Origin: Octopus bimaculoides
Lineage: Eukaryota
Direction of reading: 5' to 3'
Assembly: GCF_001194135.2 (NCBI RefSeq)
Contig: NC_068993.1
Coordinates: 44,319,361-44,383,360, forward strand
Length of the DNA: 64,000 nucleotides
The notes beneath the pieces were generated by a model. The model worked only from the letters and a program-made list of their open reading frames with translations, was not told the origin of the DNA and ran no database searches. Positions 57,501-60,500 of the stretch are shown in pieces; position 1 is the stretch's first letter; each line of letters starts with the position of its first letter. A program made the position numbers and the translations under genes.

Positions 57501-60500
57501 ATTAGCTGAGTAATTTAATGAAATTATTTTTTTCCAGGTGATCCTTTCAAAATGACTTCCATTGGAGAGATGAAAATGTGTAACTTATTGGAAGATAATG
57601 TAATTGAAGACAACCGTAAGCTGACCAAAGCAATTATGGTTAGAACATACCCTGCTGGTCTTCGTACCGATTCCAGTAATTATACACCAGTAATGATGTG
57701 GAATGTTGGCTGCCAAGTTGGTAAGTAGATATTGATGATGTTAATGTTGTTGTTGTGCCAGACTTAAAAGGAAAATCATTCCAACAATGGCTACCCTTTC
57801 TTTTCCTTTCTCTCCTCCTTTTTTGTCAGACAAAATATGAAGAACTACATTATCTAATGTATCTTTCCTTTTTTAAGACGGTTGAGTGATACAAACATAA
57901 ACCTCCCCTGTTCTACTTCACTCCTCTCCCAGGTTCCACATTGAACACTTTGCTGGACCATTCCTCCCTTGATGGTTATAAACCACTTGGAATTTTCTCC
58001 TCGTTCATGGTTTCCTTGAAGACATTGATGACTTACAAGTCTTTGAACTGGACATCAATTGCATTCATTTTTTTAACCAGTCTGGAAAGTGACCGGCCTA
58101 CAAAGACTTTGAGTGCTGATCCTCGTTGATTGACTAATTCATTAAAATAAATATCAGTTTCATTACACTCCATAACAATTTTTATTTGTTTATTTATTCA
58201 TTTTTGTATTTGGTCAATAAGTGTTATTTTCTATTTGCTTCTATCTATAAATCAAAGGAAATTACTATTCCCTTCAAAATTTGCTTTTTTTGACCAGGAC
58301 ATCAATGCTTTGAAACTGGCTCATTTTCCATCACATTTCAGACAGATTCAGCACTGAGTTGCTAAAGCAGAATGATTGTTATAGCAAATATTCTGCTCAA
58401 TACCACAGATTTGCTTGTCAGTTGCTTGACCTTAAGCACTTGAGCATATCCCTTACTGGTTGACATCTGGTTGCATCTCTAATCATGAACAGGAGTAGTG
58501 GGGGATCATCATAGCCATGTGCTGAGAGGGGTTCTTTGGAGGTTTGAATAAATGTAACAAAAACAAAATATAAAGGAAATATTAGCCAATTTGCACTCTT
58601 TCTAGGGGTAAGCAAATAGGAAATAACAGTTGCTACCCAAGGACAAAAATCGTGTTACAGTGTTATAAATGCAGTATCATTTCATACTTTAATTATTCTA
58701 TTGTGCCTCGCTTTCTCTTGCACCAAATCATCAGTATCTAAACACTTGCACCCATTCATCTCCTTCCACTGTAACATGCATTATCGAGCTATCCATTGTA
58801 TCATATTGTACATAACTTAATAACACTTGTTTTGCCAAATAATATACATTTAGTACAGTATTGTAGTTCGCTTGAAGCATTGTGTATTGTTTGTAAAGAA
58901 TAAAAAGTTTAGAATGGTACAACAATGCACTATAGTACAAAAAATGGACTATATACCTGTTGTAATTTGGTTGTCTATAGTCCGATGATATTTCGGAATT
59001 ACAATTCCTTCTTCAGATCTTCTTAGCTGGAGTCTCTGCTATAAACTCTGCTATAAGTTTATAGCAGAGACTCCAGCTAAGAAGATCTGAAGAAGGAATT
59101 GTAATTCCGAAATATCATCGGACTATAGACAACCAAATTACAACAGGTATATAGTCCATTTTTTGTTCTATAGTGCATTGTTGTACCATTCTAAACTTTT
59201 TAGTCTTTACATTTAGTACAACTTGTATATAATTTTCACATTCATCTTCCAAATTATTTCCAGTGGCACTTAACTACCAAACAGAAGACATGCCCATGCA
59301 ACTCTTGTTGGGAAAATTCTTGGATAATGGTGGATGTGGATATCTTCTGAAACCAGACTTTTTACTATTAGGTACTGTATAAGAGTAATGCTCAGCCTAA
59401 TTTAGTGCTTCTCAACCAGGTTCCACATAAGATTTTGCTGTTAAAATTTACATGCACTAAATTGGTTATACATTTACAATACTCAAAATATTTTAATTTT
59501 TTTTATGCAATTCCTAATATTTAATTATAAAAATATAATGGAAATTTTTCAAAAAATAGAATGGCTATGGAGGTCCAGTAGAGTGAAATAGGAATCAAAG
59601 GGATCCATAGGTAAAATAAATGGCTGAGAAGCACTGGTCTAATTCTTCATTTTTGATAAATTTTGAAACAATAACTTCTACCACTCTTGGACACAATTGT
59701 AAAATCAAGCAACAGCACAGCAACCATTACTTTTAGAAATATTTTTTCAGTCAGATTTATCAGGGTATGGAATAAAATACCCATGTTTAATTTTTAGCTG
59801 TCAGGACACTGAAATTTTCAAATGTTCCGCAACTTCAAACTTCCTGAGATTCACATTGTTCTGCACCTTTTCTTGTGTATGACTCTTTTTCTGTTCTATC
59901 TTTTTGTGTTTCATTCTGTGTCCTGTGCTTGAACTTTTGACTTTCATCTTTGCCTGACTTATTGCTGCTTTCTGTCCCATGTTTTCTTTTTCCCAATGAG
60001 TTGTAGTGCACCTGAGAACTGTACACAATAAGCTCAAAATAATAGTAATGCTTTCAAGTTTTGGCACATGGCCAGCAATTTCAGAGGAGGGGTAGGTCGA
60101 TTAGATCATCTCCAGTACTCAACTGGTACTTATTTTATTGGTACTTATTTTATTGACCCCCAAAAGGATGAGAGGCAAAGTCAACCTCAGTGGAATTTGA
60201 ACTCAGAACATAAAGATGGACAAAATACCACTAAGCATTTTGTCCAGCACACTAACAATAATCAGAAGAAATAGCACTAACCACTTTGTCTAACGTGCTA
60301 ATGATTCTGGCATTTCAGTACCTTTTAATGTATTAATCATGTTCAAATGTGAAAATATCCCTAAAGCAACTGTAGCTTTCAATATTAGGACTTTCTTCTA
60401 AGATCTTCAAATTTAAAGCATCAAGAATTTTAAAAAATAAATGTTACAGGGTTAGTGGTGTTAACTCTGTTTCAAAAATTTTTAACCATTTGCTTCACTA

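Follow-up and report, generated by a model that had tools for sequence, protein, structure and literature searches.

In twin priming of L1, cDNA synthesis on the element's RNA starts from each of the two ends of one staggered break, and inverted and direct segments come to lie within one target-site duplication (TSD). The segments are copied from different parts of the RNA, thus no palindrome arises. Insertions of Penelope-like elements (PLEs) are often accompanied by an adjacent inverted copy, mostly head to head and with palindromes at the junction; a tail of 30-40 bp is often found on just one side, and the documented TSDs measure 8-10 bp (PMC8557442, PMC3846280). The PLE protein of the anole cuts and extends both strands (PMC11167929; Frangieh et al. 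2024). Within an AC-rich region it starts reverse transcription from two internal positions; the first of them lies 85-92 nt beyond the hammerhead cut, and the tail is the sequence between the two; the anole hammerhead is protein-assisted (PMC11167929).

Hammerhead ribozymes of metazoan PLEs are of a minimal type, in which four hallmarks emerge unprompted: one more nucleotide stands between A9 and G10.1, G10.1 pairs with C11.1, the dinucleotide at 15.2-16.2 is palindromic, and helix III is lacking (PMC4209133; Cervera & de la Pena 2014). Published examples have a long helix II of 6-8 bp and a short helix I of 4-5 bp (2 bp in Drosophila virilis), and dual motifs occur on opposite strands, 100-700 bp apart. 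Single minimal hammerheads showed no detectable cleavage in vitro, a second sense copy was needed; helix III and loop 3 are absent, therefore the active form is a dimer (PMC4209133).

Here we describe a fold-back in an intron of a PLC gene of Octopus bimaculoides, which has the appearance of a young double insertion, dead on arrival, of a PLE end. It likely arose when a PLE, or a non-autonomous RNA that a PLE set in motion, inserted once at an AT-rich intron site, and we regard it as a tidy instance of mobile DNA of a familiar type rather than a novel regulatory device. The PLE assignment is based on the anatomy and the hammerhead motif of this locus.

Anatomy of the fold-back

Within the window, i.e., the whole 64-kb stretch of DNA that was analysed, the fold-back and its surroundings comprised the following features:

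57538-57720, plus strand: upstream PLC Y-box exon, with the ortholog P0002 in ENA contig L001
57721-59263: host intron of the fold-back, between the two PLC Y-box exons
58845-58857, no strand: left TSD copy, TACATTTAGTACA, exact direct repeat
58858-58891, minus strand: 34-nt tail, by which the left (antisense) copy is prolonged at its 3' end, in element sense AACAATACACAATGCTTCAAGCGAACTACAATAC
58892-59047, minus strand: left arm, putative PLE terminal (pLTR-like) copy, antisense relative to PLC, pairing with the right arm at 154/156 positions
58984-59019, minus strand: minimal hammerhead of the left copy, mirror of 59084-59119, found as descriptor match on the minus strand
59048-59055, no strand: loop or head-to-head junction, CTGCTATA, reverse complement of 59060-59067 (alternative pairing found)
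59056-59211, plus strand: right arm, putative PLE terminal copy in PLC sense, tail absent, last 4 nt (TACA) overlapping the TSD
59084-59119, plus strand: minimal hammerhead of the right copy, GAU / CUGAAGA / A / GGAAU-UGUA-AUUCC / GAAA / UA / U C(17) / AUC
59208-59220, no strand: right TSD copy, TACATTTAGTACA, exact direct repeat
59221-59263, plus strand: intron 3' end, untouched by the insertion, with pyrimidine-rich tract and AG acceptor as read from the sequence
59264-59371, plus strand: PLC Y-box exon downstream of the fold-back, Pfam PF00387 (PI-PLC-Y), E = 8.8e-10, with an orthologous exon in L001

The extent and the pairing of the arms agreed in every position with the first-pass annotation of this DNA. 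Mismatches were limited to 58900/59203 and 58936/59167, thus the inner 111 bp are uninterrupted; both differences are transversions. A repeat search drew the inverted repeat slightly wider, to 58883-59047 and 59056-59220 (165 nt, 96% complementary, 8 nt spacing). The two copies are oriented head to head with their 3' ends outward, and the 8-nt loop between them repeats 59036-59043, as claimed before. As RNA, the segment 58845-59263 folded at -272.6 kcal/mol, compared with -77.6 +/- 5.2 for shuffled sequences (z = -37.6). With arms that are 98.7% identical and two identical TSD copies, the insertion is young.

A 13-nt direct repeat resembling a TSD had also been noticed. The repeat itself is exact, and a composition-based estimate gave a chance of ~5e-6 for this 13-mer to recur within 60 nt of the left arm; its left copy, however, does not abut the arm. 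The two are separated by the tail, a unique sequence that has no counterpart on the right. The A+C content of the tail is 74%, a skew shared by 5.6% of the 34-mers in the window and thus weak evidence. Also weak as evidence is the AT enrichment of the reconstructed empty target site (74% vs 67% for the window).

The inserted DNA amounts to 350 bp and comprises two inverted terminal copies; an internal ORF and a direct pLTR are absent. An ORF survey detected no RT/GIY-YIG reading frame in the 64-kb window, nor did blastn (word size 7) detect a further copy of the arm there. Since 350 bp are too small for an ORF encoding RT and GIY-YIG, and none is nearby, the insertion represents a terminal fragment or a non-autonomous derivative. 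The sole ATG that stays open to the end sits in the tail. The long ORFs of the window proved mostly to be artefacts spanning N gaps.

The order of parts is TSD, tail, arm, junction, arm and TSD, with a minimal hammerhead of PLE type in each copy. Inverted pLTR pairs of PLEs, as in Pen2a_Av of Adineta vaga, Penelope of Drosophila virilis, Naiad, Neptune and Poseidon, share with it the head-to-head copies, the junction palindrome, the one-sided tail (34 nt vs 30-40 bp), the TSD flanking the whole unit and the AT-rich target. They differ by possessing the internal ORF and the direct pLTR, and by TSDs cited as 8-10 bp instead of 13 bp. The octopus insertion is also distinct from L1 twin priming: both copies span the same 156 nt and presumably begin at defined internal sites.

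The minimal hammerhead motif

The hammerhead-like string reads exactly as the first-pass annotation had given it, on the plus strand of the right arm and mirrored on the minus strand of the left arm. Its core boxes are CUGAAGA (59087-59093) and GAAA (59109-59112), with U16.1 at 59115 and C17 at 59116, and cleavage is predicted after 59116. From this site, 91-95 nt remain to the 3' end of the copy, or 129 nt if the tail is counted; the motif thus occupies the terminal, pLTR-like part of each copy, where published PLEs carry their hammerheads. The hallmarks of the PLE type are all present: A 59094 is the extra nucleotide between A9 and G10.1, G 59095 forms the G10.1-C11.1 pair with C 59108, the 15.2-16.2 dinucleotide is palindromic (UA; positions 15.1 to 16.1 read AUAU within GAAA-UA-UC), and helix III is absent. 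Helix II has 5 bp and a 4-nt loop, helix I consists of 3 bp (GAU/AUC). In an unconstrained cofold, the dimer of the motif favoured an extended helix II duplex.

The metazoan PLE hammerheads have in common with this motif the core boxes CUGANGA and GAAA, a UH cleavage site, the four hallmarks and the dual arrangement on opposite strands, whereas the helices are shorter here than is typical of the published ones, helix II by at least one base pair and helix I in between the usual 4-5 bp and the 2 bp of D. virilis. The strongest published argument for the family is covariation across its members, while the motif described here is known from one locus. A full descriptor of the motif, with helix-length thresholds that were chosen after the motif had been seen, yielded no match in 40 Mb of composition-matched Markov-1 random sequence, hence fewer than ~0.01 chance matches are expected per window. 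Apart from the two arms it matched nowhere in the 64-kb window. For a loose descriptor, 0.3 chance matches per window are expected; a relaxed descriptor applied to the window and to L001 revealed no additional motifs.

The scan with Rfam hammerhead models that had been suggested earlier returned nothing at E <= 10, neither for 58500-59600 (1.1 kb) nor for the 75-nt slice 59066-59140; the matches obtained were to generic long-hairpin miRNA-precursor models, below gathering, apart from noise. The Rfam families (types I, II, III, HH9 and HH10) have the conserved catalytic core boxes in common with the motif, but the missing helix III and the nucleotide inserted into its core set the motif apart. 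Taking the negative scan as evidence against a ribozyme was considered and dropped, since published minimal hammerheads are without helix III. With regard to genome annotation, PLE-type minimal hammerheads are wholly missed by Rfam-based scans.

In the JGI metagenomes, an exact 30-mer of the motif had no match. A degenerate 20-base pattern matched ten metagenome sequences and, in the viral collection IMG/VR, none. Nine of the ten matches were rejected as chance, as they failed the UH, palindrome and helix I tests. The tenth, L008, is convincing as a minimal hammerhead in its own right; beyond the motif it has no similarity to the arm.

Origin of the insertion

The first-pass annotation had proposed that the fold-back is a young insertion, derived from a PLE and equipped with a minimal hammerhead, and the proposal is supported by the four hallmarks, the head-to-head copies, the one-sided 34-nt tail, the 13-bp TSD and an anole-like spacing between cut site and end. 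Because the hammerhead hallmarks and the insertion anatomy both fit PLEs, this origin is well supported.

The enzymology behind the insertion we infer from published PLE work. The GIY-YIG endonuclease of a PLE would have cut the two DNA strands 13 bp apart, and both exposed 3' ends would have primed reverse transcription of the terminal (pLTR) region. If synthesis of the left, antisense copy began at the distal one of two internal start sites, the presence of the 34-nt tail on this copy would be explained. The right, sense copy may have begun at the proximal start site, by way of the 4-nt TACA microhomology to the target. Each cDNA would have ended after ~156-164 nt; the two were possibly joined head to head at a short microhomology or palindrome, CTGCTATA, and gap repair would have made the 13-bp duplication. 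So reconstructed, the event would share with PAc (Poseidon of Anolis carolinensis) the priming on two strands and the two start sites flanking the tail. In PAc, synthesis starts in A+C-rich sequence ~90 nt past the hammerhead cut (85-92 nt), and it would start in similar sequence here (91-95 nt). The ORF of PAc begins at stem II of the hammerhead, whereas here the only ATG that remains open to the end is that of the tail; the host phylum also differs. For transposon biology, the locus seems to be an uncommonly clear footprint, left in nature, of the way in which PLEs have been proposed, on in vitro evidence, to integrate: within a single small insertion flanked by a TSD, two-strand priming and both internal start sites appear to be recorded, in a tailed and a tailless copy. 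Such minimal PLE events are easy to read, and mining them genome-wide could test the integration model in vivo.

The source RNA may have been a short, hammerhead-bearing non-autonomous element, retrozyme-like or SINE-like, which a PLE mobilised in trans, instead of a 5'-truncated autonomous PLE. We consider this unlikely, with some points in its favor. The pLTR sequences of PLEs suffice for mobilisation in trans (PMC3846280), and animal retrozymes have been argued to be non-autonomous PLE derivatives (bioRxiv 10.64898/2026.07.22.740005). The arms are about as long as whole pLTRs, 181-218 bp in A. vaga (PMC3846280), so they need not be truncated copies. Retrozymes, however, are described as arranged in tandem and as bearing canonical type I hammerheads with a helix III, and neither a tandem array nor a helix III is present here. 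Anatomy and consequences would be unchanged with such a source, only the source RNA would differ. A DNA transposon of the foldback or MITE type, in which long inverted repeats form the termini and the hammerhead-like string is coincidental, would account for the long near-perfect inverted repeat and the short loop; the sub-threshold matches to generic long-hairpin miRNA-precursor models, a type often MITE-derived, also point in that direction. This origin is nevertheless very unlikely: the direct repeat is placed asymmetrically, set off from the arm by 34 nt on the left side, the ends of the inverted repeat have no duplication next to them, the full minimal-hammerhead descriptor stayed silent in 40 Mb of random sequence, and a second copy is absent from the 64-kb window. 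Nor is any superfamily of cut-and-paste elements known to us to leave a duplication of 13 bp. An error of assembly or library, either a chimeric fold-back or the collapse of a PLE insertion of greater length and complexity, had to be considered as well, since the scaffold has gaps (8 N-runs in the window) and the tandem and inverted structures of PLEs trouble short-read assemblies (PMC8557442, PMC3846280). It is highly improbable in view of the two differences between the arms, the one-sided tail and the clean TSD within unique intron sequence; the nearest gap is 11 kb off, and the central microhomology of 8-9 nt is presumably too short to mislead a k-mer assembler.

The fold-back in the PLC transcript

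The exon that follows 52 nt past the end of the right arm was recognized as a PLC Y-box exon in the first-pass annotation, in agreement with its Pfam match. With the spliced Y-box peptide as query, two proteins were matched, and one of them led to contig L001, which carries both orthologous PLC exons at 76-79% nucleotide identity. The orthologous L001 intron (2.85 kb; one related species) contained nothing similar to the fold-back. An alignment of the two introns scored at the level of shuffled sequence. As the introns are not alignable, L001 cannot serve as an empty-site control.

In the PLC pre-mRNA, a very stable duplex of ~156 bp must form according to the folding model. The hairpin could in principle have been selected by the host, as an ADAR editing platform, as hpRNA or miRNA precursor, as splicing regulator of the Y-box exon or perhaps as a conditional ribozyme. 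The stability of the 156-bp duplex and its end, only 43-52 nt before the acceptor, would suit such a role. Yet nothing like it exists in the orthologous L001 intron, though the introns cannot be aligned at all; the Rfam matches to miRNA precursors were all below gathering (e.g., 75.7 vs 110 bits), the two arm differences are not of the A-to-G kind, and a single minimal hammerhead is inactive in vitro (PMC4209133). Selection of the hairpin by the host is thus extremely unlikely. The young age of the insertion and its probable origin from a transposable element would account for the perfect pairing without selection. A later co-option, in which the co-transcriptional duplex would act as ADAR or Dicer substrate or as a switch tuning inclusion of the Y-box exon, and in which the hammerhead would cut the pre-mRNA only if the duplex were unwound or a PLE protein were present, has the same very faint chance. 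Most likely the insertion has no present-day role and is a neutral or mildly deleterious passenger.

It had further been suggested that the antisense arm sequesters the ribozyme and so protects the host transcript. Such protection is unnecessary, because single minimal hammerheads did not cleave detectably in vitro and only one sense copy is present here. The lone sense hammerhead in the PLC transcript is expected to be catalytically silent, and the need for a host-protecting sequestration probably does not exist. Editing, production of siRNA and effects on splicing are plausible consequences of a duplex of ~156 bp. As regards the host gene, a structure that can form long, perfect dsRNA now lies beside the splice acceptor of a conserved catalytic-domain exon, which makes the PLC locus a reasonable place to seek editing, small RNAs or splicing polymorphism, hypothetical as their occurrence is. 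The signals for splicing at this acceptor likely lie in untouched sequence downstream of the TSD, polypyrimidine tract and branch point alike. For the latter, the sequence of the intron 3' end offers two candidates, TTCAC with the A at 59238 and TTCAT with the A at 59244.

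Architecture of the fold-back

The fold-back lies inside a 1,543-nt intron (57721-59263) of the PLC gene, whose exons in the window span over 35 kb (23701-59371, + strand). The first-pass annotation had recognized the adjacent exon as a PLC Y-box, and Pfam PF00387 matched it with E = 8.8e-10. The C-terminal Y-box sequence has what we take to be a delta/eta/zeta-like look.

PLC exons in the window
near 23701 (~23.7 kb), +, X-box exon with SSHNT
near 28037 (~28.0 kb), +, X-box exon with DCWDG...HGHTLT
57538-57720, +, Y-box exon
59264-59371, +, Y-box exon, Pfam PF00387

A repeat search of the window returned two arms of 165 nt each (58883-59047 and 59056-59220), 96% complementary and separated by an 8-nt spacer. 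Their core (58892-59047 / 59056-59211) pairs at 154 of 156 positions; both mismatches (58900/59203 and 58936/59167) are transversions, and the inner 111 bp are unbroken. The stability of the duplex was directly apparent in the folding energy of the RNA 58845-59263, -272.6 kcal/mol compared with -77.6 +/- 5.2 for shuffles (z = -37.6). The loop (59048-59055, CTGCTATA) has the same sequence as 59036-59043; its reverse complement is found at 59060-59067. The two copies of a 13-nt direct repeat, TACATTTAGTACA, at 58845-58857 and 59208-59220, are identical; given the base composition, this 13-mer would recur at most 60 nt from the left arm with a chance of ~5e-6. Arms, loop repeat and direct repeat were thus all present as first described. 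Passed over at that time were 34 nt of unique sequence (58858-58891) between the left direct-repeat copy and the left arm, and this tail is an important detail. The layout was read directly from the DNA:

Layout of the fold-back, in order
58845-58857: target-site duplication (TSD), 13 bp
58858-58891: tail, 34 nt
58892-59047: copy antisense to PLC, 156 nt
59048-59055: junction, 8 nt
59056-59211: sense copy, 156 nt
59208-59220: TSD, 13 bp

Both copies have their 3' ends outward, and TACA, the last 4 nt of the tail-less copy, is shared with the TSD. No further arm copy was found in the 64-kb window, or in JGI metagenomes and IMG/VR queried by motif sequence.

The hammerhead motif

The motif at 59084-59119 reads GAU / CUGAAGA / A / GGAAU-UGUA-AUUCC / GAAA / UA / U-C / AUC, with an inserted A, a closing G-C pair, a palindromic UA, U16.1 and C17. 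On neither 1.1 kb nor a 75-nt slice did the Rfam scan proposed in the first-pass annotation return a hammerhead match at E <= 10; the sole matches at the fold-back were generic long-hairpin miRNA-precursor models, each below its gathering score. As evidence against a ribozyme this result changes its meaning, because the published hammerheads of metazoan Penelope-like elements (PLEs) are "minimal": they have no helix III, and a dimer is the presumed active form (Cervera & de la Pena 2014, PMC4209133). An extra nucleotide between A9 and G10.1, a highly conserved G10.1-C11.1 pair and palindromic positions 15.2-16.2 lay outside the search descriptor of that study and yet emerged consistently; helix I is described there as short and helix II as long (PMC4209133). 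Helix I, at 4-5 bp in typical PLE minimal hammerheads and 2 bp in D. virilis, is 3 bp long in the window; helix II, 6-8 bp in the published cases, is 5 bp. PLE-type minimal hammerheads escape Rfam scans, as the window motif shows.

A loose descriptor (both core boxes and a stem of 4 bp or more) has a chance expectation of 0.3 per window. With the published hallmarks added, the full descriptor gave no match in 40 Mb of simulated first-order Markov sequence matched to the window in composition (less than ~0.01 per window), its helix-length thresholds having been chosen after the motif was seen and its qualitative features taken from an independent source. On the real window its sole match was the fold-back motif.

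An independent minimal hammerhead-like motif was observed in a JGI metagenome contig from an AT-rich eukaryote (Ga0184641_1241789, 1,037 bp, 27% GC; 412-437, - strand): uagcc-CUGAUGA-U-GGAAU/GAAU/AUUCC-GAAA-UA-UU-ggcu, with a helix I of 4 bp and helix II arms identical to those of the window motif. It lies in just one arm of a compound inverted repeat (330-495 / 642-750).

Origin of the fold-back

Architecture and motif grammar indicate that the fold-back is probably a PLE-derived insertion; the layout, the motif hallmarks and the chance estimates support the earlier proposal of a young insertion with a minimal hammerhead. PLE insertions are strongly 5' truncated, frequently carry an adjacent inverted 5'-truncated copy, which results in inverted repeats, and frequently have a 30-40-bp tail at one end only (Craig et al. 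2021, PMC8557442). Inverted terminal repeat regions (pLTRs) of 181-218 bp with TSDs of 8-10 bp were described, one with a 31-bp tail on its 3' end; the commonest inverted arrangement is head-to-head and has palindromic sequence where the copies meet (Arkhipova et al. 2013, PMC3846280). Feature for feature, the anatomy in the window matches that of a PLE insertion. A purified PLE protein cuts and extends both DNA strands, and an AC-rich region contains the two internal sites from which reverse transcription begins, the tail being the sequence between them (Frangieh et al. 2024, PMC11167929). In that PLE the hammerhead cuts at +26 and reverse transcription starts at +111-118, which places the first start 85-92 nt downstream of the cut; in the window, the predicted cut (after 59116) lies 91-95 nt from the copy end, or 129 nt including the tail. 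The A+C content of the tail (74%) is weak evidence only, because 5.6% of window 34-mers are equally skewed. Reconstruction of the empty site gives 74% AT; the window has 67%.

Following the cited biochemistry, a staggered double-strand cut, 13 bp apart, would have been made, and both 3' ends would have primed cDNA on the PLE terminal RNA, one at the distal start site and one at the proximal. The two short cDNAs may then have been linked head to head through the CTGCTATA microhomology, and repair would have produced the TSD. Self-priming at the terminal palindrome, as proposed in PMC3846280, would be an alternative route and still PLE biology. An arm identity of 98.7% and identical TSD copies indicate an evolutionarily recent event. 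Its main value would be as a compact natural record of PLE dual-strand priming and of the use of two start sites.

The tail contains, at 58858-58880 (- strand), an ATG in the sense ACAATGCTTCAAGCGAACTACAATAC, open to the tail end. Since the PLE ORF of A. vaga has its first 12-22 codons in the pLTR plus tail (PMC3846280), this ATG could, speculatively, have served as start codon in the parent element. Each single arm has a fairly stable internal stem-loop of its own (59138-59190, +, with a mirror in the left arm; the isolated arm has z = -3.0 against shuffles) just upstream of the presumed reverse-transcription start region, in a place matching the protein-binding region and start sites of the anole PLE.

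From the window, an inserted non-autonomous PLE-mobilised element looks no different from a truncated autonomous PLE; it is the less likely of the two, and the mechanism would be unchanged either way. Less probable still is a MITE or foldback DNA transposon, against which the asymmetric 34-nt stretch, the duplication length and the hammerhead motif statistics argue. An assembly artefact has a similarly slight probability: assemblers are known to have difficulty with PLE structures (PMC8557442, PMC3846280) and the window is a gapped scaffold with eight N runs (4,249 bases in total), but the arms differ by two mismatches, the structure is asymmetric, and the clean TSD lies in unique sequence with the nearest gap 11 kb off.

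N runs in the window
670-738
4156-4971
11893-12386
15411-15837
25834-26211
28815-29703
40663-40848
47050-48039

Most mechanically listed ORFs of at least 130 aa in the window cross N gaps and were rejected as artefacts.

Present-day function and the host intron

The fold-back most likely has no current function. With one antisense and one sense copy, the PLC pre-mRNA contains one hammerhead only. Single minimal hammerheads gave no detectable in vitro cleavage and dimers cleave weakly (PMC4209133), while the anole motif depends on the PLE protein (PMC11167929). RNA folding did not give a hammerhead for the isolated arm and left the motif of the full transcript buried inside the duplex. Sequestration of the ribozyme, earlier proposed as a protection of the host transcript, would appear unnecessary. 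An editing or siRNA substrate and an effect on splicing, also proposed in the first-pass annotation, are hypothetical roles. Untouched sequence of 43 nt separates TSD and exon; in it lie the AG, the pyrimidine tract and an A at 59238 or 59244 as candidate branch point, as would fit a tolerated insertion.

A hairpin selected by the host found no support and is the least probable reading. An ENA contig from a related species (ERZ21867824, contig ctg109374l, 111.6 kb) carries the orthologous PLC Y-box exon pair (9976-13118; 76-79% nucleotide identity in the exons), and its 2.85-kb intron contains nothing like the fold-back, a weak comparison as the introns are unalignable. Two further ORFs lie in the 20-kb stretch around these exons, one for a mariner-like transposase (1873-2433) and one matching RVT_1 (18402-20159). 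In the window, the host intron contains an older, decayed inverted repeat (58200-58251 / 58599-58650; 52-nt arms, 75% complementary, with 347 nt between them), which may be the remnant of another inverted-repeat element.
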